Shown here in pieces: positions 4,118-32,178 of a stretch of DNA of 64,000 nucleotides; the stretch's first letter is position 1; each line of letters opens with the position of its first letter. Made by a program: the position numbers and the translations under genes. The stretch covers positions 87,687,921 through 87,751,920 of the forward strand of contig NC_092383.1 of assembly GCF_030028105.1 (NCBI RefSeq), read 5' to 3'. The stretch comes from Mobula birostris (taxonomy: Eukaryota). Under the pieces are notes generated by a model. It saw nothing but the letters and a program-made list of their open reading frames with translations, searched no databases and was not told the DNA's origin.

Positions 4118-4127
4118 GGAAGTGAAA
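4118..4127 (+). promoter_or_regulatory. Candidate PU.1/IRF composite element (EICE) GGAAGTGAAA
   Basis: Exact match to GGAAnnGAAA inside GGGGAAGTGAAAG, about 82 nt upstream of the gene 1 ATG. Motif match only. Confidence 0.5.
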
Positions 4128-4208
4128 GTTTGGACACAGCAGAGCCGAAGTAGGACTGGGCAAACAAAAAGGCTGTTCGCAATCTGGAATTAACAACAGT
4201 AATTAAAA

Positions 4209-4248
4209 ATGGGTATGACTCTTCTACTATTGGTCACTTTCCTCTCAG
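4209..4248 (+). CDS. Gene 1 exon 1: leader MGMTLLLLVTFLS(V)
   Basis: ATG at 4209 in context AAAATGG, 13 hydrophobic codons + G, donor GTAAG at 4249. Phase 1 joins the Ig exon to give ...FLSVTYA|DITGP, a plausible cleavage site. Confidence 0.8.
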
Positions 4249-6503
4249 GTAAGAAAACATTGATCTTATTTAGATTTTTCAAAATATTGTAACTGTAGTA
4301 TTGTATTGTGAAATATTGAGTTAAAGAAGTAATGTAGGTTTGCATCTGTCTGACCAGAACTGAGATCTGTGAGGAATTCTGGCAACAGTATTTTTGATGC
4401 CTCTCAAAACAGAATTCTCTCTTAACTCTCAGAGAAATGTTAATCTGTGCCACTTTCCAGCAGTGACAATAGAGGAACAAAACACTTGGTATAATTGCCA
4501 GGCGACCAGAATTTAAACATGGCCAAGTTGAATTCTTTCATCAGATAAAGCACTGCATACAGAATCTTGGACTAAAAGGGCATTGTGCTTCATTTGGTAA
4601 AATTTACAGCAATGTACCTCATTTAAGTCGCTGATATGTTAAACCAGATAAAATGATAACAATACTCCTGTCAAGAGCACAATTGAGAATGCAAAATGAT
4701 CTTTTAAAATCAATTTATGTGCAATGTTGTGGAGAGTCATAAGTGATAAAAAAAAATCTAAACACCATTCTAAAGCTTTCAGTTCCTATAACGTCCTCAA
4801 ATAACAAAACTGAATTATAAAGATTTTTGTTACCATTTGTTACTCTTTTCTGGGAAGTGAGATTTTAACTGCTAGTTAACACAGTATAACATTGCTTAAT
4901 TCTGTATAACACAGAGGCAATGTCTGCCATTCAGCTTTGCTGATTTGTAATAATGAGCCGTTAAGCTGTGGCTTATATGAAGCAACTTTATATGCTCTTG
5001 AGCTGACAAGGGAATTTCAGTTCCTGGCATCTGTAAAACTAGTTGGCAGCCAATTAGTTAAAAGACTCAGCCTCTTTATAAATAATTCTGCTCAGCTGAT
5101 TCAAATGAAGAGAAATCACTTCTTTATTCGTAATAGGCCAAGTTTGTCTAAAGTTTACGTCTTTGGACAATGCTCAGTATTATTAGCAGCAGAGCCTGGT
5201 TCCACTCAAGTTTCAGTTATGCCAGGGTTACCAAACTTTTTGTGCCATTAACTGAGGGGTCTGTAGACACCTAGCTGGGAACCCTTGGGTTACACCTATT
5301 TTACTTGGGTGGTTCTTAAGCAATAGATAGACAGATACTTTTTTGGTCCTGGTGGAAATTACAGTGTCACTGTAGCATTACAAGTGCACAGATATAGCAC
5401 TTTGAAATCCATGGTAGTGCTCTTATACTGAGGTTCCTTCCTGAATACAGATTGCTTTTATTCATTGTTTTGTGAAAGAATTTCAGTTTCTGTAAAATAT
5501 CAAGTTATTGCAAGCACCTTTTGGCAGTATCAGTGCTTTCCTCCAAGGAGTGTAGTGCAGCCAGAGACAGCATCACTCAGAAGAAATGTTAAACCAAAGA
5601 CCTATGATACTATTTCTATAGAAGTCATTCCTTCCACAACCCATTTTATTCCTTAGAGAACAGCATAGAAAATAACCTGGTTACAAGCACATAACAATTT
5701 CTGAGATCTTGTTGTGCACACATAGCTGCTAGGGTTCTTACATTAAAATGGCATTTGCTCATCAAAAAAAAACACTTTGAGACAATGTCAGACCATGGAA
5801 AGTATTACATATACAGTCTTCCGTTAATATTATCATCTGCCAATAAATTATTCTGCATGTTATTTATTTAGAAGATAGACTGAATCATTATGTTTGGTGA
5901 TTTTTAAAAATGTGCTAAGAGCCTTTAAGTAGTTGGTGGTAGGACTGGGTGGTGGACTGAAATTAACTTGTTAGAATCTAAGAATCTCCAATCTCCTGAA
6001 TTGATCGGTTTTAACTCAAAGTGTCGTTATCAGACTTTGCTAAATGCTCTTAATAGGCTGGCCTGGTTGAATGGAATTCAGCATAAATAACAAATACAAA
6101 AGATTCTGCAGATTTCGTAAATCCAGAGTAACACACAAAAGCTGCAGTAACTCAGCAGGTCAGGAAGTATCTACGGACTGGAATAAGCAGTCAATGTTTC
6201 AAGCAGGGACCCTTCATCAGATCCTGTCAATCTGTCAAAATTGAGGTGGTTTTCCACCATTGACCAGTGCACAGATATTTCTGTGTAAACCTTCAGTGTG
6301 GACTGGAAGAAATCTTCAACACATCATTTGACACTAGCTTCAAAACAGACTCCAGAATTCAAAGCACAAGTGGTACTGCAGATGCTTGAAATCTAGAGCA
6401 ACATACACAAAGTATTGGGGAATAAGCAATGTTTTGGGCCGAGATACTTCCGGTCCATAGATTCTCCCTGACCTGTTGAGTTCCTCCAGCACTGTGTGTG
6501 CGT

Positions 6504-6544
<41 letters not shown>

Positions 6545-9500: not shown

Positions 9501-12500
9501 CTGAATGAGTCCACACTGACCTCTTGTTTCCATCCAGGGGGTCAGTGTGGACGTGGTGGAGGATTACAAGTACCTGGGGATACGAATTGACAATAAACTG
9601 GACTGGTCAAAGAACACTGAGGCTGTCTACAAGAAGGGTCAGAGCCATCTCTATTTCCTGAGGAGACTGAGGTCCTTTAACATCTGTCGGATGATGCTGA
9701 GGATGTTCTACGAGTCTGTGGTGGCCAGTGCTATCATGTTTGCTGTTGTGTGCTGGTGCAGCAGGCTGAGGGTAGCAGACACCAACAGAATCAACAAACT
9801 CATTCGTAAGGCCAGTGATGTTGTGGGGATGGAACTGGACTCTCTGACGGTGGTGTCTGAAAAGAGGATGCTGTCCAAGTTGCATGCCATCTTGGACAAT
9901 GTCTCCCATCCACTACATAATGTACTGGTTGGGCACAGGAGTACATTCAGCCAGAGACTCATTCCACCGAGATACAACACTGAGCGTCATAGGAAGTCAT
10001 TCTTGTCTGTGGCCATCAAATTTTACAGCTCCTCATTTGGAGGGTCAGACACCCTGAGCCAATAGGCTGGTCCTGGACTTATTTCCTGGCATAATTTACA
10101 TATTATTATTTAATTATTTATGGTCTTATATTGCTATTTTTATACTCTATTCTTGGTTGGTGTAACTGTAATGAAACTTAATTTCCCTCGGGATGAATAA
10201 AGTATGTCTGTCTGTCTGACTGTATATCTTATGGCCTTATTGACATACACTCAGTAATCACTTTATAAGGTACAGAGGTACCTAATAAAGTGGCCACTGA
10301 GTGTATATGGCAATTACATGAGGGTTTCAATTAAATGGAGTCAAAGACTCATAAAGCTCATAAATAGGCCCTTCAGCCACCATCTCCATGCTATCCCTTA
10401 CTTCTTTACATAAGCTATTTTGTGCACAGCAGTATAAGCATTTATCTCTTGTACTTTACAACATGTTATATTTTCACACTTACAGTGACATACGCTGACA
10501 TAACTGGACCAAGTGCGAAAACTGGAACGGTGGGAAATGAAGTTGAAATCGACTGCAAGTTTAACCCATTTTTCAGAAGCTATCAGAAGTACTGGTGCAA
10601 AGGATACTACCGCAGGACCTGTACTGTTTTAGTACAAACACAAGGCCCTGAGATGAAAAGTGGAGACGGCAGAATAACAATTGCAGCTAACAACAAAAAA
10701 GGAGAACTTACAATACGAATAGAAAGATTAAGAAAAAGTGATGAGGGTTGGTATTGGTGTGGAATAGATAAACCTCATCTTCTGGATCCTTTAAGTGCTG
10801 TAGAACTGAAAATTCGTGAAGGTAAGATATTACTCTGACCTGCAAGTCCCAGACTTGTATGTCCTTTGCATAAATTTAAGATATTCTGCAGATGATAGAA
10901 ATCCAAAGGAACAAACACAAAATACTGAAGAAACTCAGCAGGTCAGGCAGCATCTATGTAGAGGAACGTACAGCCGATGTTTTGGTCTGAGCCCAAAACA
11001 TCATTCTTCTCCATAGATGCTGCCTGACCTGCTGAATTATTTTGTGTTTGTTCTTTTATATGGTCCTTTCTCTGTTTTCTCTCTCTAACTGCCTTTATTA
11101 ATCTGTCAGAATGATTTAAAACACAAGAGGTTCCGCAGATGCAGGAAATCCAGAGTAACACGTACAATATTCTGGGAGAACTCAGCGGGTCAGTTAGCAT
11201 CTATGGAAATGAATGAACAGTCAATGTTTTGTACCAGACTCTTTATCAGGTCTTGGCCTGAAGCATTGAAAGTTTATTCCTTTCCATAGATGCTGCCTGA
11301 CATGCTGAGTTCCTCCAGCATTTTGTGTGTAACAGAATGATTTGTTTGGTCAAATTTATGTTTGTTAACATGTCTGACATTCACCTTTACATTTCTGTAC
11401 GTGAGAAACTGAGCCGAATTAGTTATGTTAGTAGGCGACATGTTGGCATAGCAGTTGGCATAACTCTATTGTAGTGCCAGGGATCCAGGTTCCATTCCAT
11501 CACTGCCTGTAATGAGCTTGTAGGTTCTTCCCTGATCGTGTGAGTTTCCTCCAGGTGCTCTAATTTTTCCACACATTCCAAAGATATAGGGGTTAGTAGG
11601 TTAATTAGTCACATGGGTATTATTGGGCAGCGTAGCCTCATTGGGCATGTAGTGTGCTGTATCTCGACATAAATGAAATAAGCATTAACACTTTGGACCC
11701 AAGATCAGGACAGAGGTTGTGTATCTCACCCGCTGTCTCTCCAATGCCATTTCACCATTGACAAGGTGGGAGTATGCTGGAGTCGCCTCCATTTGCCTGA
11801 AAGAATGTAGATCTAATCGTACAGAAGAAAACTGATATCACAGAGGCATTTTAATGGACAATGAAAATATTTTAAAAACTGCAGATGCTGGAAATCCTAA
11901 ATAAAATCAGAAAATGCTGAGAACACTCAGCAGGTCAGGTAGCATCTGCAGAAACATTATTTATTTCAGTTTGAAGGTCATTCATCAAACTGGAAAACTG
12001 AATAAAAAGATTAGTTTTAAGTTGCAAAAGGATGGGGTTGGGATATCTCTGAGAGAGTGAGAGCAGAATTGCCATGGTGATACGTTGTTTATTAAACCAC
12101 CTGGTTGACAGATTATGAAGGCAGTTGGAGAGTAAGAAATAAAGTTGTGTATGATTATGAAAGGAAGATCAAATTTTATATATCGCTTTGTTCTCTCCTT
12201 CTCTATCTGCTCTTTTCCTTGTAATGGATCAAGCAGAAATCAATTGAAAATGGTGGTCAGTAGGGTAGGGAGCATATTTGGAAAGAGATGCAGAGTTATC
12301 ATTCACGTTCGTTTATCACATCAGAAAGAGTGAGAAAACCGTTAGCTTTTATTTTTTATGTTTCAGGGAGGGTGCCAACAATAGATAGGACTAAGGGAAA
12401 TCGCTGAGAGGGTGACGACAGTGTTGCTAGAGTGATGTTCTTCCTATGGAGCTGTGCAGTTGGTGAATTAGTAAAAGGGTGTTGGAGAAAGAACAAACAG

Positions 12501-15500
12501 AGAAAAACCTGAAATACACAAATTATACATCTTTTTCTCTGTTTTCTTGTGATAATTTCCCTTGTTAATCTACCACAATGAGCTTTTTATTTGTCTGTGT
12601 TGCATCACAACAGTTGAGAATGAATCAAGAAATGCATGAATAACAAAATAATGCTTTTATATGTTTTAACAGTTCAAAAGTTACTTCCTTCAGACAAACA
12701 AAGACTCAGGTGAGTGTCCATTTTCCTGCTGTGGACCAACCCAAATACAAAGTAATAAAATGGGATATTACTGAGACATTAATGAATCTATGTAAAAGAC
12801 TTGGACACATACAGGTATATATAGCTAGGCTGCCGAAGACTTTAGCACAGCTCTGTATTTGTCAACGTGAAGCAGGGATCGAGTTTGTAAACCTGGTGGG
12901 AGCAGAGGATGTTGGGAATGGTGAGGGTGGAGTGCTGTGGAAGGGGTGTGGAACAGGTGGCAGAGAAGGAGAGAGAAGGAGTGCCGGGGCGGTGGGGTTT
13001 GGCGGGGGGGGAGTTGAAGGTAGAGACACACCCAGGCCCCCGGAGAAGGTCTTTTCACTCCAAACAATTAGTTTATTGATCATTACAGAATGTTTCTCCA
13101 GTTCTTCCCACTCCCTCCCCTCTCCCATCCCCTTTTCCCAACCACGATTCCTCTCTCCCTGCCCCCTTCCCACTATCAGTCCACAATAGAGACCCATATC
13201 AGAATTAGATTTACCATCACTCACGTATGTCATGAATTTGTTTTGTGCAGCAGCTGTACAGTGCAATAAATAAAATTACCACAGTACTGAGTAAAAATCT
13301 TCGGCACCCTAACGATATATACGTGCCTAAGACTTTAACACTGTGCTGTAGACTCATAGAATCGGTGAAATGTACAGCAAAGAACAGGCCATTTGGTCCT
13401 CCAGTTCTATACTGGCCATCTTGTTTATCTGTACTAATTCCATTCAATAATTTCATATCCCTTTATGTCATGCTCAGTCAATTACCTGTCTAGATACTTC
13501 ATAAAAGTTGTTATTTTTACTGCTCCATTATCCCCTTTAAACCTCTGCCCTCTCACCTTTGCCCTTTGATTTTAGACACCCTTATCATGGGAGACAGATT
13601 ATTTTCTATCTACCTACCTGTGCCTCTCAGAATTTTATACGCCTCACCTCTCAGCCTTCTTTGTTCCTGGGAAAACGCACCCCACCCCGCCTAACCAATC
13701 TGCTAAAACTCTCATCCTCCTACATATCCAACTTTATAGATTAATACCTGGAAGTCCTTTAAGGGAAGTTTGGGCAGATAGTTTGTATCCACTGGAATGG
13801 AGAAGTTTGAGAGGAAACTAGATGAAAGCATGCAAGAAGGTGGATGTTGAGAGTCTGGACATAAAGATACTACTCCCTCTTGTGAGAGAAACTGGAATTA
13901 GGAACCACTGTTTAAAATTAAGGGATCGTCCATTCAAGGCAGAGTTAACATGAAGCTATTTGTCTCAGAAGTTTACGACTCTTTGGAACTTCCTTCCTCA
14001 ATGGGTAGCTCAATTGAAACCCCTGAATTTTGGAAAGAAGTATTTGATAGGTAAGGGAGTGAAAGATTATAGGGTTCAGCTGGGAATGTTGATGCTACAA
14101 CCATGCTGTTATAACTGAGATTTATTATCACCGACGTATGACGTGAGTTCTGTTGCTTTGTGACAGCTGTGCAGTGCAAGGACATACAGATCTATAAATG
14201 TACAAAAACAAAGCAAATAAATAATTTGGAGAAAATACAGAATAATGAGTTGTGTTCATGGGTTCAAGGACAGTTCAGAAATCTGATGGCAGAGAGGAAG
14301 AAACTCTCTTCAAAAATGTTAACTATGGGTCTCCAGGCTCCTATATCTTCTCCCTGTTGGTCGTACTGACGACAGGGCCTGTCCCAGATGGTGGAAGTAC
14401 ATAATGATCGAAGATGTCCTTGATAGTGGGGAGGCTGGTGCTCCAGTTTTATGTGGGCTCAATTTTTTTTTTCTGTTTTCTTTACCATCAAGGAGATGGC
14501 TTCCTTGGTGCAGACTGTACACATAGTGGGAAAGGGCATTATAACACCAGCACCTGCTCAGCAGGGCTGCATTGTTCCGAGCCCAGCTCCCATCTCTTGT
14601 GAGATGCCGGCAGCCTGGTTACTCTTATGTAGCCACAAGCTTCCCAGCATCCCACCCATTCCCTTCACTCCTGCTGCCCGCCTTCCCGAAAGAGCCTTCT
14701 GCGAGCGCTGACCCAGCCATGGAAACGAGTGCAGGCCAACGAAACAACCCTTTATCCCTCAGACAGTTCGCCCTGCCACAGTCCCTTGCACTGATTCCAG
14801 GTTGCTTTGAAAACCATTTGAAAAAATTATGCCGAGTTTAAGTAATAAATTGATCAGGGGCGGCGCAGTAGTGTACCAATTAGCGCAATTGTTCTATAGC
14901 ACCAATCAGGAGTCAATTCCCATTGGAGTTTGTATGTTATCCTCATGACTGTGTGTTTCCTCCGGGTGCTCCAGTTTCCTCCTGTATTCTAAAGACGGAT
15001 GGATTAGGGTTGGAGTTAGTGAGTTATGGTAATGCTATTTTGGCGTTGGAAGCATGATGACACTTTCAGGCGCCCAGCTCAAACCCCGGACTGTATTGTT
15101 CTTGGATGCAAAATGACGCATTTCACTGTATGTGTTAACACTTCGATGTACATGTAACAAATAAACTAATTTATAACATTAATAAAATGCTAAAAATTGG
15201 CAATGTGTAAATGGATTAAAATTTCAGGCGGGAAACACAGGTAATTCCAGGGACCTTTCCTGTGAAACTCAATGACTCCCCATGAAGCAGAATAGAATCT
15301 TGCCAGATGCACCAGTTTTGAGAGGGGTAAAGCAGAGGGGAAGAGTTTGTGCCCGCCCCCCCGGCTCCACAAGTTATGGAACTACTGCTAGCCCTAGTGC
15401 TGAGCTAGTGGTGGTCCTCAGGGCCAGATGTCTTGCTATTCACCTGCTAGTGCACGCCATTGCACAGACATAGTGAACCATCAGTTCAGTGCAGCACAGT

Positions 15501-18500
15501 TAACTATTATAGAGATTCACAGAAATTTCCCAATTTCCATCAAGATTTCTGCTGAACCATCAGCTGAGGAGTGGAAATTGACCCTCCCCCCCATCAAGTT
15601 CAAGTTTATTGTCATTCAACCATATACTGTATATACATACGCCAAATGAAACAACATTCCTCCAGACCCAGGTACATAACACAGTATATATATATATATA
15701 TATATAACTCACACAACACATAAAATAATATTACTATACATAAATTAACAACTAATAAAATATATTCCAGAAGACTGACATTAAGCATAATCTAGTGACA
15801 ATCTCCAACTGCATCATTTTCATTAATCACCAGCAAACTTGGAGATCAACCTACCAAGAAACTATCAAACTGCCAAATTTGGGGTGTCTTTCCATCTTTC
15901 ACCAGTGCCCAGATGGGTCTGCACGAATCTTTAGCATAGACTGGAAGAAATTTTCAACACCTCATTTAATATTAGTTTCCAGAATTCAAAGCATAAGAGA
16001 TTCTTCAGATGTCGGAAATCTGGAGCAACACACATAAAATGTTGGGGAATAAACTGTTGACATTTCAGACCGGGACCCTTCATCATGACCTGATGAAGAC
16101 TCTTGGCCCAAAACATCAACTGTTTATTCTTCCCAATAGATGGAGCCTGACCAATTGAGTTCCTCCAGCATGAACATGTTACTGCAGAGTTGCATTTTCT
16201 ACAACAAAACCACATTCACGCTTCTGCTTTTACTTTAGTTTGCATCCTAATATAATATGTCATAAATCTACAAAAGGGAATAAAACTAGGAAGTGCAATT
16301 CGTTAATTTGTAAATTAGCAATTGGTTTAGTAAATTGTCTTATCATTATCAGGTGTACACGGGTACAATGCAAAATATTGTTTTGCATGCCGTTCACACA
16401 GATCATTTCATTACAATGGTGTATTGTATAGTCCAAGGTAAAACAATATTAAAATGAAGACAAGAAGTGTTTCAATTACAGCGAAAGTGCATTGCAGTCA
16501 GACAATAAGGTGCAAGGTCCTAACAAGATAGATTATGAAGTTAAGAGTTCATCTTTTTGTTTAAGGGGACCATTCAATCGTCATTTCACCAGATAGCATG
16601 ATAGTTGTTGTCCTTGAGCCTGCTTTCAGGTTTTTATATATTTTACTCAACGGGAAGGGAGAGAAGAGAGAATGTCTGAAGTGGATTTTATGATATCACT
16701 GTTAGATTTAATAATGGTATTACCACTGATAGGATCCATCTGTCATTATAAAGTTAATTTTCATGGCATTTGTACTCTGTGTATTTATGCCCATGATAGC
16801 AATAAACATGAGCATGTTTCATCAAAAGCGTATGCCGGCTGAGGCTGTAAAAATTGTACAGAGGATCAATCAATTGTGAAATAACAATTGCTGTTTGTCA
16901 TTGTAATTTTTCATTGATTCTATGGTATTTCTTTACTCTGCTTTGAGTTCCTGCTTGAAAATGAATCTCAGGGTACTACTTGGTGACATTGATAATAAAT
17001 TTACTTTGGAACTTTTTACAAAAGCTGCAGTGGAGTCATTTATGAGGTTGTGGAAAGAGGAAGGGAGTTCATTTTTTTCTTTTTATATTCAGTCGTGGAA
17101 GTCATAGGTCCTTCTGTGGCTGAGCAGAGTAACGTTGGTAACTGGTAAGAGTGGGATCGAGTGTCAAAGGGGTTCTAGGGAATGCCACTGTTACCAGTGA
17201 ACCAATGTTAGTTTATGATAGATAAAGAGAAATTGATTATGTCCCTGGGGCTTCAGCAAGTGAGCGGGAATGCAATCAATGTCTCTTTATCAGAACTCCA
17301 TCTATTATTAAACCATTGTAGATGGATCACTGACTCAATGCCACATTGCTTTTGGCATGTGGGAGGGTGTAATTCCACATTGGTTGCTAGGGTTAAACAC
17401 ATGCAAAATTATTGGCTGCCAGTTGAGCACAATCCCAACATTCAGCTGCACTGAAGTTAACTTCAGTGTCCTAGATTGTAATCTGATGTTAGAAAATGAC
17501 AGCCATTATATCAGGTAAATTATATTGCATATATGATTACCATCATCTTTCATGGTGCATATTCGGCTGATACATTCTGACCTTATCTTACTGTTCTTTT
17601 TTACTCTCTTTTTCATAAAAACCAAGGCTTTTCATAATACTTGGACTAGTCTTTGGAATACTAACTATGGTGTTTCTCGGACTCCTGGTACTAGTTATGA
17701 AAAAAGTGAGAAAGCAGAAAAATAAAGGTAAGTTCAGAAAATAAAGCAAAGTTTTTGCATTAAGGTAAATCCTTGCTACAAAGAAACACTAATAACATGA
17801 TATAAAACAAACTTAAATTATTATATCTTGATTTGCTATGATGCACATGCATTTACACTCAAGAACTATATGTGAGTTGTCAGGCACAAGTCTCCTCAGA
17901 TTTTAATTTCAATAACCTCACTTTTTTTATTTTATTCTGGCATAGATCTCAATAAAAGAGTCAGCCAAAAGTGATGGAACCTCCTTCATCTCTCTGGAAG
18001 AATAGGAGTTCTGTTGCACTGTCTATTCAGCACAATATAATGGTGACAGGATTGCCAGTGACATGGCGACAATTTGTGTGTGACACAATGCAACGTGCAT
18101 TGTTTCTTGCTGATGCTTTACAAAATGTTTGGGAGTCACGTTAGCAACACAAAGGTGATTTTTATTTGTTAATTAAAAGGACTGCTTGTCAGCAATCTAT
18201 CAGACTCAAGGCCATCCTCCTGTTTGGGACTGCAGAAAGAAACAAAACAATTATACTTACTTGAACAATTATCAACACACTGAATGAATGAGCTAGAACA
18301 CATTAAATTCTTCTTTTGTTAAAACAGGCACCATTTGATTACCTGCTAAATAATCTTATTGATTGCCCGTAATGCATATATTGCATTTTTGGTCTGTTAG
18401 GAGAATTTTCCCTTTCTCCTATTACCCACTCTCCTCACCTATCAGATTCCTTTTTCTCCAGCCCTTGACCTCCCCCACCCTACCTTTACCTATCGTCTTC

Positions 18501-21500
18501 TAGCAAGCGTCCTTCTCTTCCTCCCACCTTTTTATTCTGGCATCACCTGCCTTCCTTCTCAGTCCTGATGGCAGGTCTCGGCCCGAAACATCGACTGTTT
18601 ATTCATTTCCGTAGATGCTGCCTGGCCTGCTGAGTTCTTCCAGCTTTGTGTGTGTGTGTGTTCTATATTTTTGTTTGGTTTGAGCGGAGAAGGGTAGTTA
18701 GATGAGGCACAAATTACATTAGTCCAAAGTTCCAACATATCCAATATCCCACAATATAAAGAGGGTCTTAAATTCAGTGGTTTCTGTGTGAAATTTGATT
18801 TTAAGGAAATGGAGTCATCTCCTTCAAGTGAAGCAAAAGCTGAATAGCAACTGAATCCTACCCAATCAATACAATTGATCTAAAGTAGTTCACAACTGGT
18901 TCACTTTTCACTGGAATGATAATTATTGACTGGGCTCAATCTTTGAGGGTCTGCCTTTGCATTTAATTATTCACAGCTCTGAATGAACATATGGATGGCT
19001 GCAAAGTGGAATTTAAAGGGAAGCAGGCAATTGAAGGGCAAGAGACAGGTGAGTGGGATCAATTCTAACAAGAATTCGAAAGTCTCAGGAAAGGGCTTTT
19101 TAACATATATATCAGTAGCATTTTCCAGTATGATAGGGAAATAGAATGCTGATATAACCATCAGACAGGAAATGATAAATCTGCAGTGTAACAGTTCATA
19201 AAAGTTTTGCCTTGCATTTGCCTCCCTGCTTTATGAAAATGTTCTTGCGTGAGTTGGGTTTAAGTGGAACCAACCAGAGAGACTGCAAACCAATACTAAA
19301 AAATCCAGTGGAAACTTACAAATCATGATGGAAACTCAGAAAGGAAGGCAGACATGTAAGCAGAATTACAAGATTAGAGAATAAATGAGCAGCCTGCAAC
19401 ATCAAAATAAGACCAGTATTGCAGTTCAGATGCCCTTGAAAGGAATTTTTCCATGGAGAAATATATTTATACTTGGAAATAACTCGGAAAATGTGTAGCT
19501 CAGGTGGTTGATGGTTGGGTCTGGTCTTGGCATCCATTTTCAAACGTTTCGTCACCATACAAGGATGATGTCTCCTTGTATGGTGATGGAACGTTTGCAA
19601 GTAAATTGCCAAGATCAGAGAACAACTCAACCAGTCAGACTTATACATATATTGCACAATTTTCAACCACAAATTGTCCTGACTACTTTATAAAGAACCT
19701 TATAAATAATGGTTGAAATGCTGACACAATGATATTGAAAGAAAATATGGCAGTCAAGGCAAAAGTACATCAAATAGCAAAAAGATAACGATTAGATCAT
19801 CAGTTTGGTGACGTTGGTTAAGGGACATCAGGATTAGCTTCTGCTCTTCTAAATGGTGCCTTGGTAATCATTTTCGTCCAGCTGAAGGGCATTCCCTTGA
19901 TGTCATAAGACCATAGGATATAAGAGGAGAATTAGACCATCTGGCCTATCAAGTCGGCTCAGCAATTTCATCATGGCTGATTATTTTCCTTCTCAGACCA
20001 AATCTCCTGCCTTCTTCCCACATCCCTTCATGCCCTGACTAATCAAGAATCTATCAATCTCTGCCTTAAATATACATCCATATTGAAACATTTCCTCTGG
20101 TTAACCATGCAGCATCAGCCCAGATCATGGAATCAGAGAATGTTTACAATACAGGAGGAAGCAATTTGGCCCATCATGTCTTTGCCAGCTTTCAACCAAT
20201 GTAACTCACTAGTTCCATACCAGCCCATTCTCCAAAGCTTTCTTCACCACACATTTATCCAATTCAGTTTTGAAGGCCACAAGGAAGCCTACCTTCTCCA
20301 CATCCGCAGGCAGTGTAGTCCAGATTCTAACCACATGTTTCATAAAAAAGCAATTCCTAACATGAGTTTTACTTTTCTTCTCCTTTATTTTATATTGATA
20401 CCTTTAGTCCCTGACTATTCTGCCAACCGGAACAGCCTCCCACCATCCAAACACACAAAATGCTTGAGGAACTCAGCAGGCCGGGCAACATCCATGGAAA
20501 GAAATAAACAGTTGACATTTCAGGTCGAGAACCTTCATTGAGACTGAAAAGGAAGAAGCCATTCTGGCTTTCTGCCCTTCCTTTCCAATCCCAATGAAAT
20601 GTCTCAGACCAAAATGACAACTGTTTATTCCCCTCCATAGACACTGTCTGACCTGCTAAGTTCCCCCAATATTTTGTGGGCATTACTCAAGAAAGCCAGC
20701 ATCTGCAAATCTCCTGTGTCTCCCATTATCCACTTTGTTCACCAAACTCAGCACTTTATATGCTTCTATCAAATTATCCTCTCAGCCTTCCCTAAAAAGA
20801 AACATTCCCACTTTCCCCAGCCTTTGTTTGCAACCAAAGTCCTTCAACCCAGTAACCATTCTCATATGGACCTTCCTTGGAACAACAAGGAATGATACAA
20901 TTGCCTTTTATATACCCAAAAGAAATATGAATAGACACCTAAGACAATATGCATAGAAAAAGGCAATCACCAACAATACTCAGATGTGAAAATTATTATA
21001 CAATCTAGTTCACAGTGAATGAATGGAAATTAAACAGTGCAACTGTTTCAGAATATATAAAGAGATTTAAGTTCACACACATGACTGACGTAGCTTGCTT
21101 AACAATAGCCAAAACAAAGTCCCTGTTTAACACTCATGACATCCCTGTAAAGATTTATTGTGAGTAGTGGTTTAAACCATTACACAAAGGCTGAAGTGTT
21201 GTCAACTGAGGAAGAATAGATCAGATTCTTCTTGAAAATTGACGCACCATGTATCTCAGTTCTCCTTTTTCTATCTGAAGGTCCAGTGAATGTTAAAATT
21301 TGCATTTAACTGAGTATGTTTTCAGATAGTCTTATTTATTCTGGCTATGTTTGTATTTTTAGATAAGGAGAAGGAGTCAGCTGCCGAGAATTCTATTCCG
21401 AAGTCAAACTCTGCGGTAAGGCTGCACACTCTTGACAATAGGATGTTTTGGAGTCGGCCATATCATTTGAAGAGTATGTTACCCATTTCACGATTCAAAG

Positions 21501-24500
21501 TACACTTATTATCAAAATACATACGCAGTATACAAAACCAAAATTCATCTTCCCCACAGGCAATTATGAAACTAAGAAAATCATGGAACCCGTTCAAAGA
21601 AAAACATTAAATTCCTTCCCACATACGCAAATAAAATCCAATCACGCAAACGGCAGCAAAAAAAAGTGAGCGAGAAACAGAATATAAAACGCAAAATCGA
21701 AAGAGTCCTGGCAAATTCAGTTCTGCTCAGTTCGTTATCTGCAGGCTGCCCTGATCAAAATTGCCCAAAGTAGCAGCAAAAGAAAGAGTGATCAGAAACC
21801 AGAAACACATCATAACATGAACTACGGAGTCCAATCCATAAGCCACATCAATTAAACCTTGCCCAAGCTCAGAAATCCAATTACATTGGATTACGTTACA
21901 TTAAAGAGATTACATATCCCATTTAAAGAATACGTTGCTACTGTGGATATGTAGGTTTTATATATACAGTACGCATCAGACCTATCTATTTTATGTTTTA
22001 TCTGGAGATACTGCACAGTAACAGGCTCTTCTAGCCCGACGAGCCCATAATGCCCAATTACACCCACGTGACCAAGTAACCTACTAACCTGTAGGTCTTT
22101 GGAATGTGGGAGGAAACTGGAGCACCCAGAAGAAACGCACACAGTCACTGGAGAATGTACAAACTCCTTACAGGCAGAGAATGAATCCAGTTTGCTGGCC
22201 CTGTGATAACATTACGCTAGCCTCCATGCTACTGTGCTGCCCCAAACCAACAACTGCTTTGCAATTACTGCCATCAAAGTAGTAAAGCATCTCACATCAC
22301 TTCACGAGTGTAATGAAATGTTTACACTAAACTGCAGGAGATTTTGATACATTTGTGTGCCTGATTTCTTGCTCTGAGAGTGTGCCCCATTGTTCCGTAA
22401 CCTTCAGCTCAAGAGAACAGCTTCCCATCTCCTTCTCCTGAACCGTGTACTCCATACACTTAAGATCATAGCACCATAAGATATAGGAAGAGAATGAGGC
22501 TATTTGGCACATCGAGTGTGATCCACCATTCCATGATGGATTTGTTCTATTAAGAGATACAGTACAAAACAGGCCCTTTTTGCCCAATGAGCCGCACCAC
22601 CCAGCAACCCACCGACTTAACTTAGTCTAATCACCGGACAATTTACAATAACCAATTGACCTACTAACCGGTACATCTTTGGAAGGTGGGAGGAAACTGG
22701 AGCACCTGGAGGAAACCCACACAGTCACGAGGAGAATGTACAGACTCCATACAGATAGTGATGAATTTGAACTCTGCACTCTGATGCCTTGAGCTCTAAT
22801 AGTGTCACGCTACCCATACGCTACTTATGCCTCTCAAACCCACTCTCCTGTAACGATTTATTGTCATAATGTTTTAACCTTGTAGTATATCAATGCACAG
22901 TCAAAATAAATTGATCTGTATGGGCAGTAGGTAAAGCAAGATTTTCACTGTACTTCAGTACATGTGACACTGATAAACCAATTACCAATTTGTGCTGATG
23001 CGAGACAACATAGAGCCTCTAACTCACACATTCAGCTACCGGGTTCAAATGGTATCTGTGTTGAGTTTACATGTTCTCCCGTTTACGAAACTAGTTTCTT
23101 CAAGTGCTTCAGCTTCCCCCAAATCCAAAAGACGTACAGAACATGTTAGTAGAGTCAAATAATATGACAATAAGACCTTAAGATATAGGATCAGAATTAG
23201 GCCATTTGGCCCATTGTGTCTGCCCTGTCATTTCATCATGACTGATCCAACTTTCCTCTGAGCCCTAATCTCCTGTCTCCCCCATATCTCTTCATGCTGT
23301 GACGAATCAAAAATCTGCACTAAGTGTACATAGGCTTGACCTCCACAGTTACCTGTGGCAAAGAATTCCATGGATTCACCACTCTCTGGCTGAATAAGTG
23401 TCTCATCTCTGTTCTAAAAGGACACACCTCCATTCTGAGGCTGTCCTCTGCTCTAAGACTTTCCCCCCATAGGAAACATTCAATAGGTTTCGATGAGGTC
23501 ACCCCTCATTCTTCTGAATTCCAGCAAATACAGGCCCAGAGCCATTAAACACTCTTCACAGGTCAAGCTATTCAGTCCTGGAATCATTTTCGTGAACCTC
23601 CTTTGAACCCTCTCCAGTTTCAGCACATGTTTATAAAATAAGAGGCAGAAAACTGCTCATAATACTCCAAGTGAAACCACGCCAGTGCTTTATAAAGTCT
23701 TAATATTACATCCTTGCTTTTATATTCTAGTCCTCTTGAAATGAATGCTAACATTACATTTGCCTTCTTCACCACAGACTCAACCTGCAAATTAATCTTT
23801 AGGGAATCCTGCACAAGGTCTACCAAGTCCCTTTGCACCTTAGTTTTTTGTACTTTCTCCCCACTTAGAAAATAGTCAAGCCTTTCATTTTTTCTACCAA
23901 AGTGCATGACCATACACTTCCAGACACTGTATACCATCTGCTATTTCTTTGCCCATGCTCCTAATCTGTCTAAGTCCTTCTGTATCATCTCTACTTCCTC
24001 AAAACTACCTGTCCCTCCACCTGTCTTTATATCATCATCAAACTTTGCAACAAAGCCATCAATTCCATCATCCAAATCATTGACATGTCACGTAAGAGAA
24101 ATCGGTCCCAATACAGACCCCTATGGAACACCAATAGTCACCAGCAGCCAGCCAGAAAGGGCTCTCTTTATTTCCACTCTTTGCCTCCTGCCAATCAGCT
24201 ACAGTTTTATTTATGCCAGAATCTTTCCAGTAATACCATGGGCTCATAACATGTTAAGCAGCCTTACGCGTGGCACCTTATCAAAGGCCTTCTGAAAATC
24301 CAAATACACAACATCCAGAGATTTCCCTTTGTCTATCCTGCTTGTTATTTCTTCTTAGAATTCCAACAGATTTGTCAGGCAAGAGTTTTCCCTTAAGGAA
24401 ACCAGAATGACTATGGCCTATCTTATCAGGTACCTCCAAGTACCCCAAGATCTCATCTTTAATAATTGACTCCAAATTCTTCCCAGTCACCGAGATCAAA

Positions 24501-25753
24501 CTAACTGGCCGATAGTTTCCTTTCTCCTGTCTTTCTCCCTCCTTGAAGAGTGGAGTGGAGTGGACAGAATCTTCAGTGAGTTGACAGGAGTGGACAGAAT
24601 CTTCAGTAAGTTGAAGATGAAATGAATTAGGCTGGATTAATGTAAAGATGGCTGCTTAATGGTTGCATACACTCAGTGGTGTGAAGGAATGTTTTTGTGC
24701 TGTTTCTATGATTCTACAGGATTCCTTCTTGGTCTTCTAAAACTCCCGTGTGTTGGTTAACCCTCTCCAAGGAACTTATCCCAGATATGAATATCCTTAA
24801 CATTTTGTTCCCCGGCTAATTGAACATAGAACAGTACAGCACAGGAACAGGCCCTTCGGCCCACAGTGTTGTGCTGAACCAATTAAATTAGTGATGAAAT
24901 GTCTAACTAAGGTAATCCCTTCTGCCCACACGATGGCCATATCCATCCATGTCCCTCACACTCATGTGCCTCTCTAAATGTCTCTTTAAATTCCCTGATG
25001 TATCTGCCTCTACCACCACCCTAGGCACCGTATTTCAGACACCCACCACTCTTCGCGAAAAAAAGAACTTGCCCCTCGCATCTCCTTCAAACTTACCTGC
25101 TCTCACCTGAAATGCATGCACTCTGATATTAGGCATTTCAACCCTGGGAAAAAGATACTGTCTACTCTGTCTTTGCCTCTCATAAACTTATAAACCTCTA
25201 TCAGATCACGCCTCAGCCTTTGCCGCTCCAGAAAAGGCAACCCAAGTTTGTCCAACCTCTCAGTGTAGCACATTCCTTTTAATCCAGGCAGCATCCTGGT
25301 GAATCTCTTCTGCACCCTCCCCACAGCCTCAACATCCTTCCTATAATGGGCGACCAGAACTGTATACAATACTCCAGGTTATATATCTGCCCTCTTGATA
25401 TGGAGACCACAGCAGTACCTGCTACACCAGAGTACCAGACTGTATAAATAGCAATTACATAGTTTTATACCATAGCCCTTTTTTTTTTTTACTATGGGAG
25501 CAATTAAAGCCAATATAATTTCACTGAAGAGTTAACACTTTGTCTCATTCTCTGTCTGCAGCTCTCCAAAGAGAAGGAAGCGGGAGTTACCTACGCCACT
25601 GTAGCGATTCGGCCTACTGGCCACCCTCAGGAAGACTCCGCCACGTACGATAATGTGAACCCTTCCAGCAGCCCGGAGGAGAACAAGCCATCAGTTATCG
25701 AGCCTCCAGCTTCAGAGCCGATAGAGTATTCTACAATTGCATTCAAAAAGTAA
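4209..25753 (+). CDS. Gene 1 (spliced): CD300/pIgR-like (MDIR-like) inhibitory receptor, 252 aa; join(4209..4248,10486..10821,12673..12709,17627..17727,21363..21415,25562..25753)
   Basis: Six exons with GT-AG boundaries and compatible phases (1,1,2,1,0) sum to 759 nt = 252 aa + stop. They give signal peptide, V-set Ig with 4 Cys (IDC, KYWC, RTC, YWCG), stalk, hydrophobic TM, and a tail with VTYATV, ATYDNV and IEYSTI. Confidence 0.88.
6104..6500. mobile_element. Two Penelope-derived terminal-repeat fragments with hammerhead-like motif (6188..6220, - strand)
   Basis: acacaaaa-gctg..gaactcagcaggtcagg arm. Minus strand reads CTGATGAAGGGTCCCTGCTTGAAACATTGACTG. Confidence 0.65.
6493..6541. repeat. 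(GT)n microsatellite
   Basis: About 24 GT units, directly extending the ttttgtgtgt end of a Penelope arm. Confidence 0.95.
7405..8060 (-). mobile_element. Degenerate Rex1-like LINE 3' fragment
   Basis: Starts with the (aatcag) tail and gcagcagtacagtgcaatacataaa motif, then cattcagaaatctgatggcagag. The same block recurs at 14110-14410, 34315-34680 and 63860-64000. Confidence 0.5.
7495..7592. repeat. (ATAA/ATAG)n low-complexity repeat
   Basis: aaataaataggtaaataaatagataaatacatacatagatatatatagataga. Confidence 0.8.
9038..9218 (+). mobile_element. 5'-truncated copy of the same SINE with TSD
   Basis: Near-identical to the 3' half of 36..356; 11-bp TSD TGTCTGTTAGA at 9027-9037 and 9219-9229. Confidence 0.85.
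9530..10218 (+). mobile_element. Rex1/Babar-like LINE 3' fragment (RT C-terminal region)
   Basis: ORF 9547..10065 YKYLGIRIDNKLDWSKNTEAVYKKGQSHLYFLRRLRSF...FYESVVAS is typical of the Rex1-clade RT C-terminus. 3' end is AATAAAGTATGTCTGTCTGTCTG. Confidence 0.8.
10486..10821 (+). CDS. Gene 1 exon 2: V-set Ig domain of CD300/pIgR/TREM type
   Basis: Acceptor ttttcacacttacag ends at 10485; donor GTAAG at 10822; 336 nt, phase 1-1. Translation TYADITGPSAKTGTVGNEVEIDCKFNPFFRSYQKYWCKGYYRRTCTVLV...SDEGWYWCGIDKPHLLDPLSAVELKIRE has the canonical Cys/Trp plus the extra C-C' Cys pair of this family. Confidence 0.95.
10880..11332. mobile_element. Two palindromic Penelope-derived units; the second (11118..11332) has an 11-bp TSD
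   Basis: Inverted arms gaactcagcaggtcaggcagcatctat / atagatgctgcctgacctgctga; TSD CAGAATGATTT at 11107-11117 and 11333-11343. Confidence 0.75.
11437..11685 (+). mobile_element. V-SINE-like tRNA-derived SINE (other copies about 14857-15170 +, 22020-22240 -, 22570-22830 -, 23000-23150 +, 46130-46310 +, 55080-55335 -, 62840-63105 -, 63320-63615 +)
   Basis: Conserved core gtttcctccaggtgctc..tttcc..cacattccaaagac typical of the V-SINE central domain. Confidence 0.65.
12673..12709 (+). CDS. Gene 1 exon 3: short stalk (V)QKLLPSDKQRL(R)
   Basis: Acceptor tatatgttttaacag, donor GTGAGT at 12710. 37 nt, phase 1-2, exactly bridges the Ig exon and the TM exon. Confidence 0.75.
12820..13350. mobile_element. 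Composite repeat ending in a ~67-bp Tc1-like palindrome (13282..13348); second copy 33530..33875
   Basis: CAGTACTG(T)GCAAAA.TCTTAGGCAC / GTGCCTAAGACT..GCACAG.ACTG inverted arms at 13282..13348 and 33805..33872. About 300 bp upstream is homologous in both copies. Confidence 0.55.
15684..15705. repeat. (TA)n microsatellite
   Basis: About 11 TA units. Confidence 0.9.
15985..16175. mobile_element. Palindromic Penelope-derived unit with two divergent degenerate hammerhead motifs
   Basis: Minus strand ATGATGAAGGGTCCCGGTCTGAAATGTC; plus strand CTGATGAAGACTCTTGGCCCAAAACATC (16090-16117). Confidence 0.7.
17627..17727 (+). CDS. Gene 1 exon 4: transmembrane LFIILGLVFGILTMVFLGLLVLVM + basic stop-transfer KKVRKQKNK
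   Basis: Long pyrimidine tract ending ...accaag (17626), donor GTAAG at 17728; 101 nt, phase 2-1. Encodes 24 uncharged residues followed by a basic cluster. Confidence 0.88.
18390..18665 (+). mobile_element. Penelope 3' terminal-repeat fragment
   Basis: ctcccacctttttattctggcatc...ttctcagtcctgatg...gaaacatcgactg...gatgctgcctggcctgctgagtt; same 3' block as 50480-50665. Confidence 0.7.
18560..18597 (+). ncRNA. Minimal type I hammerhead ribozyme motif (A9>G variant)
   Basis: CAGTC-CTGATGG-CAGGTCTCGGCCC-GAAAC-ATC-GACTG: perfect 5-bp stem I (CAGUC/GACUG) and GAAA intact, but the core reads CUGAUGG. Confidence 0.65.
19505..19632. mobile_element. Palindromic remnant of a second Penelope-type family with a degenerate hammerhead
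   Basis: Arms caaacgtttcgtcaccatacaagga / tccttgtatggtgatggaacgtttg around a 7-nt spacer (19566-19572). Confidence 0.55.
20440..20720. mobile_element. Palindromic Penelope-derived unit (further copies about 27000-27180, 27755-27920, 28085-28215, 31600-31790, 35515-35650)
   Basis: Same inverted arms (acacaaaatgctggaggaactcagcagg / cctgctgagttcctccagcattttgtgt) with degenerate CTGATGA..GAAAC cores. Confidence 0.7.
21363..21415 (+). CDS. Gene 1 exon 5: cytoplasmic (D)KEKESAAENSIPKSNSA
   Basis: Acceptor gtttgtatttttag, donor GTAAG at 21416; 53 nt, phase 1-0. Confidence 0.8.
23170..25380 (-). pseudogene. Two decayed CR1-type LINE RT/3' fragments (23170..24556 and 24822..25380)
   Basis: Minus-strand ORF pieces VMHFGRKN..., YKALAWFHLEY, GKLLPDKS and [23 protein letters not shown] match the RT C-terminus at 53407..54105. 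Confidence 0.8.
25562..25753 (+). CDS. Gene 1 exon 6: terminal cytoplasmic exon with ITIMs (LSKEKEAGVTYATV...SATYDNV...PIEYSTIAFKK*)
   Basis: Acceptor tctcattctctgtctgcag, phase 0, 63 codons to TAA at 25751-25753. VTYATV and IEYSTI match the ITIM consensus (I/V/L/S)xYxx(I/V/L). Confidence 0.9.
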   Translation, partial: LSKEKEAGVTYATVAIRPTGHPQEDSATYDNVNPSSSPEENKPSVIEPPASEPIEYSTIAFKK

Positions 25754-27230
25754 AAATTCTTCTCCACCTAACGTTTGACCCGTTTTCTGCAGAACAGCGT
25801 CCCTATAAATCATAACTTGCTCCATTTGGATACGTTTATCACTTTGTGCGTTCTATCCAGCCACTGCATATCAGATAAGTCACAGAACATAATGCCAGAT
25901 TTTCCCAATGTGTATCCATGCCACGAATCCTAGGCACGCATTTGCCCTTTGAACTTACGTTGGGTGGACAGAGAGAATCTACTTCATTTCATGAAGGGCT
26001 CAGGATTAAGGGGAAGTAAGTCAGAACTCAGTTTTTCAGGGGAAATATTAGACATCATTTCTTCACCGAACATGGAGTGGAAATATGGAATTCTCTCTCC
26101 CAAAAACCTGCTGAGGTATGCATGCTTATGGGGTGGGGGGGGGTGTCAACTGAAAAACTCAGAACAGAGATTGTTAGTTATTTATAAGGCTGGGTGATCT
26201 GGATCCAAGAAACAAATCAGCCATGATCCAACTGAATCACGAATCACGGAATGGGCTGTAAGGCTGAATGACCTTTCGTAACTGAATGAGCAGATGGGCC
26301 GAAAGGCCGTTTCCGTGCTGTAGCGTTCTATGACTCTATAACCTACTTTTTCACCTACCTACATAACCTAATAGTCAACACTGACTTCTTAAGTAACTAG
26401 AAAGTTAGTCTCAGACAAACAGTCAAAGCCTTTTCTCTGAATCAGGGACAGACAGAAAGATAAAGCTCCATTAGGTGAGAAGTGGGGGAGTGAAGGGATG
26501 AAACACAATAGCTAACAGTCAGTCCCTAAGTTTTTCCTCTGGTGTCTCATGTACTATGGCTGTGCCATTCTGATACATAGTACCCCAGAATAGCATGCAA
26601 AAAGGTGCACAACTATAATTTCTTCCTGATTCTTCACTACTTAAGATTTAGTTTATCTTACACCTAACAGTGCTTCATTGGCTGAAGGTAGTGCGTATGC
26701 TTGCACTTCATGTGAGTTAGATACTACGACTGGCGTTCTTCACTTCAGGTTTTGTTCTGTGTTAAAAGTGCTCAGATACAGTAGTCGCACTTGATTTACT
26801 GTGGTGCAGCATCATGAAACACTTCCTCACACTCTGTTGGCCAACCGGACTGTCCAGCCTTTTGCTTCACTGCCAGCCTCCAGGCTGAGCTGCTGATAAA
26901 CAAGAGGGGTTCTGAACAACTGTCCCATGAGACTTGTCAATATTGCCTCTTGGTAAAAGCCTCTTTCAAAACTACACTTAATTACTGCAATTGTGAATGA
27001 CACACATACACAAAATGCCGGAGGAACTCAGTAGGTCAGGCAGCATCTATGGAGAGGGGGATCAGCCATTCTTTCTTTATTCTTCTCCTTAGATGCTGCC
27101 TGACCAGCTGAGTTCCTCAGCATTTTGTGTGTCTCTGTTGTTCTGGATCTCCAACCTCTGCAGAATCTCTTCTGCTTTCGAGTTGGAAATGAGATATGAG
27201 CGCAAATGGTCACGGCAATTACCATGAGTC

Positions 27231-32074: not shown

Positions 32075-32129
32075 AGTCGGACTGTGCAAAGTGGCAATCA
32101 TGTCCTGTATTAGTAGATTATTATTAAAC

Positions 32130-32178
32130 ATGAAACTCATTCAACTTATCTTCATCTTCATCAGCATTTCATTGGCAG
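32130..32178 (+). CDS. Gene 2 exon 1: leader [16 protein letters not shown](A)
   Basis: ATG at 32130, 16 codons + G, donor GTAAG at 32179. Classic signal peptide, phase 1. Confidence 0.85.

Follow-up and report, generated by a model that had tools for sequence, protein, structure and literature searches.

The question raised by this locus is whether an isolated immunoglobulin (Ig) exon of the manta ray Mobula birostris belongs to a complete receptor gene and, if so, to which receptor family that gene should be assigned. In the window (the whole stretch of DNA analyzed, 64,000 nucleotides of contig NC_092383.1), the only long open reading frame listed at this locus is the Ig exon (10422..10838). 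A preliminary description, made from the nucleotide sequence, had noted the same and had proposed a six-exon inhibitory receptor of a chondrichthyan, resembling CD300A and CD300LF, hidden in repeat-filled introns.

Exon chain and isoforms

Six exons of 40, 336, 37, 101, 53, and 189+3 nt were assembled, with AG acceptor and GT donor borders throughout as judged by sequence inspection, and with exon phases (1, 1, 2, 1, 0) that are compatible across the chain. The splice product of 252 aa was identical in every residue to RefSeq entry XP_072134935.1 (P0151; Mobula birostris "uncharacterized protein isoform X2"). The exon chain predicted in the preliminary description, including four exons of only 37–101 nt, was thereby reproduced exactly, and the chondrichthyan origin was correct. 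Blind listing of open AG..GT segments of 37, 53, and 101 nt yielded hundreds of candidates and was uninformative alone; a hydrophobicity scan combined with crude splice scoring picked the correct exons. As a gene call this is correct but ordinary and adds nothing new; it shows that exon chaining from the nucleotide sequence was exact.

All exons lie on the forward strand. The coding part of exon 1 (4209..4248, 40 nt) comprises the ATG and the start of the signal peptide, MGMTLLLLVTFLS, and ends in phase 1 at the donor CAG/gtaaga. A skate cDNA contig (L021) aligned with its nt 10-73 to 4185-4248, stopping exactly at the last nucleotide of this exon. The 5′UTR reaches upstream at least to approximately 4185 and probably to approximately 4126-4152, with 57–83 nt left by the offsets of RNA-type contigs. 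An Ets-IRF composite-like motif, GGAAGTGAAA, is located at 4118-4127; the window shows no enrichment of such motifs (6 observed versus 3.8 expected), and it is given as a lead only.

Exon 2 (10486..10821, 336 nt, phase 1/1) supplies the last part of the leader together with the entire V-set Ig domain, and was covered by L021 nt 71-409 on 10483-10821. Exon 3 (12673..12709, 37 nt) encodes a 13-aa stalk, VQKLLPSDKQRLR; it was the top-scoring 37-nt phase-1 candidate, was matched by L021 nt 408-448 on 12671-12711, and contains residues DK.RLR that are kept in an alignment of 14 orthologs. Exon 4 (17627..17727, 101 nt), found by the hydrophobicity scan, encodes the transmembrane helix LFIILGLVFGILTMVFLGLLVLVM and a basic stop-transfer segment, KKVRKQKNK; RNA-type contigs covered it with 0 mismatches (X1 record 1, X4 record 24). 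Exon 5 (21363..21415, 53 nt) was the top-scoring 53-nt phase-1 candidate; its product, DKEKESAAENSIPKSNSA, includes the conserved motif ENS[IV]PKSNS, and the skate protein was placed on 21365-21412 by tblastn. The coding part of exon 6 (25562..25753, 189 nt plus TAA) encodes a 63-aa tail with tyrosine motifs. Here, L021 aligned to 25566-25864 and 26055-26156, and the 3′UTR reaches at least to approximately 26156. The repeat load of the introns was as described earlier: intron 1 contains a retroelement with a reverse-transcriptase-like open reading frame on the forward strand (9547..10065, ORF list), and segments at approximately 18.5, 19.5, 20.0, and 20.4 kb (within 18.5-20.6 kb) were matched by thousands of unrelated contigs.

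The preliminary description had regarded the six-exon gene as complete. Its six exons are exact, and it overlooked a 72-nt cassette exon (18977..19048, forward strand, phase 1/1) that is present in isoform X1 only and encodes a cytoplasmic insert, ALNEHMDGCKVEFKGKQAIEGQET. The gene thus spans 21.5 kb with six or seven exons. RefSeq isoform X1 (276 aa, P0162), named "CMRF35-like molecule 1", equals the X2 product plus this cassette, which is conserved in Pristis, Narcine, and skates. An RNA-type contig of 1150 nt (X1 record 1) matched 17625-17725 and then directly 18975-19046 with 0 mismatches, demonstrating that exon 4 is joined to the cassette; the 2-nt shift of the contig ends relative to the exon borders reflects AG/AG ambiguity where the two exons meet. 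Before the transmembrane exon, this contig has 470 nt, a length accounted for by exons 1-3 (413 nt) and a UTR of 57 nt. The single full RNA contig seen carries the cassette. A cassette-skipping junction (17727>21363) was absent among the joints listed for contigs on 17000-22000, where many matches were to intronic repeats; the joint of exon 4 to the cassette was absent from that list as well and is evident from the aligned pieces of the contig. Short cassette-only unitigs hint at direct splicing of the transmembrane exon to exon 5, which would give the 252-aa form, and the RefSeq X2 models do likewise.

Four very short exons, together with the many alternative open AG..GT segments in the introns, could suggest that the chain came together by chance or belongs to a decaying pseudogene, with no such protein being made. 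This explanation is already effectively refuted by the identity of the product to an independent RefSeq model, by the spliced RNA-type contigs matching without mismatch, and by the skate cDNA. The latter (1276 nt, uninterrupted open reading frame of 277 aa) is collinear with all seven exons, the 53-nt exon by protein alignment and the other six by DNA alignment, and its alignment ends fall at 4248, 10821, and 19048. Furthermore, orthologs from 13 other species aligned over their full length with 59–98% identity and no disruption of the frame. The gene is real, transcribed, alternatively spliced, and conserved in sharks, rays, and skates, and its orthologs form a lineage distinct from the many surrounding paralogs. 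The suggestion that it might be poorly annotated has to be withdrawn: both isoforms are in RefSeq, and named orthologs exist there for at least 12 other elasmobranchs, those of skates including P0156 and P0157.

Receptor architecture and family assignment

The product is a type I membrane receptor composed of a leader, one V domain of the CD300/pIgR type, a 13-aa stalk, an uncharged transmembrane helix, and a disordered tail, in line with the architecture proposed earlier. Exactly one V-set domain was detected (Pfam E value 4e-15). It contains four cysteines, invariant in the alignment of 14 orthologs, that comprise the Cys37-Cys105 pair and a Cx7C pair (Cys51/Cys59). The predicted structure shows a V-type β sandwich at residues 24-124 and a helix at residues 133-169. 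The stalk comprises residues 126-138, and the transmembrane segment (residues 139-162) has zero charged residues.

A Cx7C-type cysteine motif is common to CD300, pIgR, TREM, and NKp44 (bioRxiv 10.1101/2022.04.21.489081), and the pair in the manta protein therefore marks this wider group rather than CD300 alone. Among solved structures (PDB), the V domain matched mouse CLM-1/CD300LF with 73.9 bits, human CD300LF with 66.5 bits, and CD300A with 58.3 bits; matches to the best single pIgR domain (48 bits) and to NKp44 (38 bits) were weaker. In a fold comparison with the Swiss-Prot AlphaFold models, ranks 1-8 were all CMRF35-like molecules, with CD300LF first. Pairwise scores and fold ranks thus support the predicted placement of the V domain in the CD300/pIgR group, nearest to CD300LF and CD300A, as had been claimed.

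In common with CD300LF (CLM-1/IREM-1) and CD300A (CMRF35-H/IRp60), the manta protein has type I topology, a single V domain at the N-terminus that includes the additional Cx7C disulfide, a transmembrane segment lacking charged residues, and a tail bearing immunoreceptor tyrosine-based inhibitory motifs (ITIMs); the RefSeq name of the manta gene derives from CD300LF. It differs in sequence, with approximately 20–30% identity over the Foldseek-aligned regions, and in its stalk of only 13 aa, which is much shorter than those of CD300A and CD300LF in mammals. Differences also apply to the tail, which in the manta protein combines two ITIMs with a YxN motif and lacks YxxM, and to the gene neighborhood, which is not of the 17q25.1 type. 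As a further comparison, PMC3031540, citing Cannon et al. 2006, describes the skate MDIRs (modular domain immune-type receptors) as batoid Ig-domain receptors, activating as well as inhibitory, that form a multigene family and resemble CD300, TREM, and pIgR. By this description, the likeness to the manta gene is that of batoid Ig-domain receptors, and skates carry orthologs of the manta gene.

Cytoplasmic tail and predicted signaling

Three tyrosines are present in the tail, and a motif scan assigned two of them to the ITIM consensus (S/I/V/L)xYxx(I/V/L). ITIM 1 (VTYATV, residues 198-203, 25586..25603, forward strand) has V198, T199, Y200, A201, and V203 invariant in the 14 orthologs. ITIM 2 (IEYSTI, residues 243-248, 25721..25738, forward strand) lies five residues before the C-terminus and has E244, Y245, S246, and T247 invariant; in some sharks it occurs as TEYSTV, a variant that also matches the ITSM pattern. 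Both ITIM tyrosines are invariant in the 14 shark and ray orthologs. The third tyrosine lies in YDNV (residues 218-221, 25646..25657, forward strand), a YxN motif of the type bound by the Grb2 SH2 domain, which rays, skates, and a subset of the sharks retain but Rhincodon, Heptranchias, and Chiloscyllium have lost. The motif scan found no YxxM site in the tail. Compared with sharks, the tail exon was at least as well conserved as the V domain (62–71% versus 52–63% identity). A match of the tail to Pfam DUF4692/RHEX (E value 0.013) was dismissed as noise.

These features fit the CD300A/CD300LF-like inhibitory architecture that had been predicted from the V domain, the uncharged transmembrane segment, and the tyrosine-motif tail. 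The gene most probably represents a conserved CD300-like inhibitory receptor. For cartilaginous fish, it provides a clear and conserved case of an ITIM receptor belonging to the CD300/pIgR group. For ligand, cell type, and phosphatase recruitment alike, we infer the following scheme. The V domain would bind a ligand; by analogy to the CD300 family, which binds membrane lipids such as phosphatidylserine, phosphatidylethanolamine, or ceramide, this might be a lipid of the same kind. Both ITIM tyrosines would be phosphorylated by Src-family kinases, SHP-1, SHP-2, or SHIP would dock on the phosphorylated ITIMs, and activating signals would be damped in the leukocyte bearing the receptor. Binding of Grb2 at the YxN site could contribute as well.

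Mammalian CD300LF can also signal positively, and YDNV would permit the same in the manta protein, an observation that speaks against a purely inhibitory reading. A receptor of dual function would use YDNV, via Grb2, and the membrane-distal tyrosine for activating or endocytic signaling in some cells, as reported for mammalian CD300LF, and "inhibitory" would then describe only half of its role. Consistent with this are the conservation of the YxN motif (residues 218-220) in rays, skates, and some sharks, the fit of the shark TEYSTV variant to the ITSM switch motif, and the fact that CD300LF itself is the best overall match. The transmembrane segment plus tail of three orthologs also resembled Pfam SIT weakly and below threshold (E values 9e-4 to 3e-4, 20–22 bits at a cut-off of 27.6); SIT is a SHP2-interacting adaptor that combines ITIM with Grb2 sites, and this weak resemblance speaks for the inhibitory type as well. 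Yet YxN is the motif that was lost in three shark genera, whereas both ITIMs are invariant; moreover, the tail has no YxxM site and the transmembrane segment lacks a charged residue with which an ITAM adaptor could pair. We therefore consider dual function rather improbable and retain the inhibitory reading.

Chromosomal position

The human CD300 cluster is located at 17q25.1, beside RAB37 and SLC9A3R1, and the preliminary description had proposed corresponding synteny with SLC9A3R1. In the manta genome, 17q25.1-type markers were found on chromosome C28, with HID1 at 1.58-1.78 Mb, otopetrin at 1.81 Mb, and EBP50_C (NHERF) at 3.27 Mb, the last also being present on C11. No V exons were detected beside the C28 NHERF gene in 200 kb sampled as alternate 10-kb blocks. 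The gene is on C18, and the proposed synteny was not borne out; positional orthology with CD300 is therefore unsupported. With the gene away from the CD300-syntenic locus, transfer of the ligand from CD300 by analogy also becomes weak.

On C18, the gene belongs to a 2-Mb cluster (85.9-87.9 Mb) in which related V exons number at least 88, and all 88 V-exon matches fall on this chromosome. The markers on C18 were TMCC (81.6 Mb), an SLC41A-type gene (89.1 Mb), IL10 (93.8 Mb), SARG/C1orf116 (94.63 Mb), and PFKFB (94.71 Mb). By these five markers the block is collinear with human 1q32.1, whose order we take to be TMCC2, SLC41A1, IL10, C1orf116, and PFKFB2, with PIGR in the IL10-C1orf116 interval. 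The manta cluster lies between TMCC and SLC41A.

By its position, the gene might belong to the PIGR/FCMR/FCAMR lineage and encode a polymeric immunoglobulin receptor, for IgM Fc or J chain, instead of a lipid sensor of the CD300 type. FCMR, PIGR, and FCAMR adjoin on human 1q32 (PMC6509151), and the gene and its cluster lie within the manta block collinear with 1q32.1. In the same direction point the V-domain subtype, matches of the V domain to all five human pIgR domains (155 bits in total), and the annotation of neighboring elasmobranch genes in the cluster as pIgR-like, with as many as five V domains. Taken singly, however, the domains favor CD300LF, with 74 bits versus at most 48 for any pIgR domain, and FCAMR ranked only 22nd by fold. 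The manta protein also departs from pIgR, with 2-5 tandem V domains, and from FcμR, with a long non-ITIM tail, in having a single V domain together with an ITIM tail; ITIM tails are, to our knowledge, not a feature of pIgR, FcμR, or Fcα/μR. Finally, the cluster occupies the TMCC-SLC41A gap, 6 Mb from the IL10-C1orf116 interval in which human PIGR resides. A polymeric immunoglobulin receptor of the PIGR/FCMR/FCAMR lineage is accordingly judged improbable, and a CD300-like inhibitory receptor remains the preferred assignment.

The more useful by-product of the analysis is this position, which places the family in a 1q32-type and not a 17q25-type block and bears on the origins of pIgR, IgM Fc receptors, and CD300. 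One possible, as yet tentative interpretation, toward which we do not lean, is that the CMRF35-like and pIgR-like genes of elasmobranchs make up one 2-Mb cluster within the 1q32.1-type block, with none in the block corresponding to the mammalian CD300 locus, and that CD300-type inhibitory receptors with a single V domain and the pIgR/FCMR/FCAMR genes go back to a single ancestral locus predating the split of cartilaginous and bony fish. If so, this would contradict the published view that places the first PIGR homologs in bony fish (PMC4016189), and the manta gene, kept as a distinct ortholog lineage in sharks and rays, would rank as the oldest stable representative of that ancestral locus.

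Exon structure and annotation of the receptor gene

Between window positions 4209 and 25753, the ORF list contained the Ig exon as the sole long ORF (10422..10838). By reading the sequence, the coding part of exon 1 was placed on the + strand from the ATG at 4209 (40 nt, donor CAG/gtaaga), followed by the V exon (exon 2, starting at 10486 downstream of an acceptor, 336 nt, 3′ end GAAG/gtaaga) and the last exon, which encodes the tail and runs from 25562 to the TAA ending at 25753. A + strand hydrophobicity scan from the Ig to the tail exon gave one convincing TM segment, from 17622 onward, and exon 4 was assigned to 17627-17727 (101 nt) by its AG and AAG/gtaagt borders. For the 37- and 53-nt exons, all open AG..GT segments with the required length and phase were considered, and crude splice scoring ranked first the segments at 12673-12709 (exon 3, stalk) and 21363-21415 (exon 5), both on the + strand. 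The six joined exons comprise 756 coding nt, translating to 252 aa.

A search with the V exon retrieved a 252-aa protein with 100% identity across the domain, XP_072134935.1 ("uncharacterized protein isoform X2 [Mobula birostris]"), which identifies the window as giant manta ray DNA, and the full product of the six-exon model in the preliminary description matched it at every residue. All six exons were correct; missing from the model was one alternative exon at 18977-19048 (+, 72 nt, phase 1/1), a cassette encoding the 24 extra residues of a second RefSeq isoform from the same locus (P0162, 276 aa, "CMRF35-like molecule 1 isoform X1"). Named orthologs of 252-279 aa were found in many elasmobranch species, comprising rays and sawfish (Mobula hypostoma, 98%; Hypanus sabinus; Hemitrygon akajei; Pristis pectinata, 78%; Narcine), skates (Leucoraja, Amblyraja, Rhinoraja), and sharks (Heptranchias, Pristiophorus, Rhincodon, Carcharodon, Chiloscyllium; 59-66%). 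Since RefSeq holds the exact product, the second isoform, and named orthologs, the guess that the gene might be poorly annotated was wrong; it is an ordinary, already annotated gene. The observation itself is confirmed, and its interpretation was largely right.

Transcription and splicing

About half of the sampled words from 10300-11000, 48% of which is V exon, were present in three sequencing runs from one organism. Contigs were placed on window positions 17000-22000 only. In a 1150-nt contig from run X1 (run names are distinct from those of the protein isoforms), letters 471-571 aligned to 17625-17725 and were followed at once by letters 572-643 on 18975-19046, with 0 mismatches; the 2-nt shift corresponds to the AG/AG ambiguity at these junctions. 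The contig is the TM exon joined by splicing to the cassette exon, and the 470 letters preceding the TM exon are accounted for by exons 1-3 (413 nt) and 57 nt of UTR. In run X4, a 599-nt contig stopped at 17727, and runs X2 and X4 contained short unitigs with the cassette exon alone plus flanks of ~30 nt, which look like the graph bubble expected if the cassette is both included and skipped. The skip junction 17727>21363, which defines the 252-aa isoform, was not found among the matches listed for contigs placed on 17000-22000. Short intronic repeats at 18.5, 19.5, 20.0, and 20.4 kb occurred in thousands of RNA-type contigs.

Independent support is provided by skate sequence: Logan contig L021, assembled from a skate run (1276 nt, with an uninterrupted ORF of 277 aa), matched the window solely in pieces coinciding with exons, namely exon 1 at 4185-4248, the V exon at 10483-10821, the stalk exon at 12671-12711, the TM exon at 17617-17729, the cassette at 18981-19048, exon 5 at 21365-21412 (at the protein level only), and the tail exon and 3′UTR at 25566-25864 and 26055-26156.

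At 4118-4127 (+), 82-91 nt 5′ of the ATG, GGAAGTGAAA fits an Ets-IRF composite element pattern; the site coincides with the inferred starts of the RNA contigs or lies slightly 5′ of them. The window showed no enrichment of this pattern, with 6 occurrences against 3.8 expected.

Protein architecture and family placement

The 252-aa protein consists of a putative leader (residues 1-17), a V-set domain (residues 19-125, Pfam E 4e-15) with the canonical Cys pair 37/105 and a Cx7C pair 51/59, a stalk (residues 126-138), and a TM segment without a charged residue (139-162). The structure model predicts a single helix for residues 133-169 and disorder for 169-252. A motif scan found no N-glycosylation sequon in the protein and three tyrosines in the cytoplasmic tail, two of them in matches to the ITIM consensus (VTYATV, 198-203; IEYSTI, 243-248) and one in a YxN site (YDNV, 218-221). 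When 14 orthologs were aligned, the invariant or nearly invariant positions included the four cysteines, GWYWCGI, the stalk motif DK.RLR, ENS[IV]PKSNS of exon 5, the tyrosines of both ITIMs, and FKK at the C-terminus. Identity between manta and sharks was 62-71% in the tail exon and 52-63% in the V domain; the signalling tail is therefore at least as constrained as the ectodomain. The TM and tail (residues 143-246, exons 4-6) reproducibly matched Pfam SIT, an SHP2-interacting adaptor, but with sub-threshold scores of 20-22 bits, short of the curated cut-off in all three species (E 9e-4 in manta, 3.5e-4 in Heptranchias, 2.7e-4 in Carcharodon). The cytoplasmic cassette segment (24 aa, conserved ..DGCKVEFK..) was present in batoid orthologs (Pristis, Narcine, skates, manta), whereas the annotated shark orthologs, of 252-253 aa, all lacked it; the exon either arose in batoids or has gone unannotated in sharks.

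The data establish the structure and transcription of the gene, its domain architecture, and the motifs with their conservation. Beyond this, a mechanism may be proposed in which the V domain would bind a ligand, Y200 and Y245 would be phosphorylated, SHP-1, SHP-2, or SHIP would dock there, and activating receptors would be inhibited; Y218 could optionally bind Grb2.

The highest-scoring solved structure was mouse CLM-1/CD300LF (73.9 bits, single-domain score), followed by human CD300LF (66.5), CLM-6 (59.4), CD300A (58.3), human pIgR D5 (48) and D1 (35-40), and NKp44 (38). Antibody V domains scored <32 bits, bar one two-domain nanobody construct (43), and no TREM structure was among the best 60 matches. 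A Swiss-Prot fold search with the AlphaFold model (V-domain pLDDT about 80-90) ranked human, rat, and mouse CD300LF first, then CD300A and the remaining CMRF35-like molecules; TLT-1, FCAMR, and pIgR ranked lower. Both rankings are led by CD300 proteins, and by these matches the V domain does not fall outside the CD300/pIgR/TREM group initially proposed.

Genomic cluster and synteny

The window occupies 87,687,921-87,751,920 of contig C18 (NC_092383.1). A six-frame search of the whole 4.0-Gb assembly for the V domain gave at least 88 matches, all on C18 at 85.9-87.9 Mb and none on other contigs. The closest paralog (44-47% identity) was less similar than the shark orthologs, and the gene is therefore an old, distinct lineage in the cluster. 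The cluster is large and in part very young: hits recur every ~105 kb at 86.20-86.64 Mb (at least five copies) and every ~20 kb at 87.588-87.628 Mb (three copies), and one pair is separated by 45.9 kb, which indicates that segments were recently duplicated in tandem. Four V exons at 87,281,509-87,286,302, spaced by ~1.5 kb, look like one multi-domain pIgR-like gene.

Downstream in the window lies another receptor gene of this family (32100-54760, +), with leader-like (32100-32288), V (44275-44586, within ORF 44188-44766), and TM-like (54553-54681) segments on the + strand; the two V exons share 38% identity. The same neighbour follows the zebra shark ortholog, where RefSeq merges both into a 638-aa "pIgR-like" model (P0003), and gene order is therefore conserved. 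Long LINE-type reverse-transcriptase-like ORFs lie in the introns of the downstream manta gene (47313-47723, 51664-54105, and 58165-58788, +).

The human CD300 neighbourhood is 17q25.1. Synteny markers were located by Pfam domains, and those of 17q25.1 mapped to contig C28: HID1 (1.58-1.78 Mb), otopetrin (1.81 Mb), and an EBP50_C domain of NHERF type (3.27 Mb). No V exon was found beyond the NHERF gene when 172 family proteins were searched against 200 kb in alternate 10-kb blocks; the same queries hit the window's two V exons 449 and 471 times. The CD300 synteny anticipated earlier is absent: the receptor resembles CD300LF, but by these markers it does not correspond in position to the mammalian CD300 genes.

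On C18, the cluster is preceded by TMCC (81.6 Mb) and followed by an SLC41A-type MgtE domain (89.1 Mb), an IL10-family exon (93.83 Mb), SARG/C1orf116 (94.63 Mb), and PFKFB (94.71-94.74 Mb). Human 1q32.1 presumably has the same order, with TMCC2, SLC41A1, IL10, then FCMR/PIGR/FCAMR, C1orf116, and PFKFB2. The gene sits in a pIgR-type block, but 6 Mb off the IL10-C1orf116 interval. FCMR, PIGR, and FCAMR are adjacent on human 1q32 (PMC6509151). A 2014 survey did not find PIGR homologs in sharks (PMC4016189); RefSeq now contains multi-V "pIgR-like" genes for several elasmobranchs.
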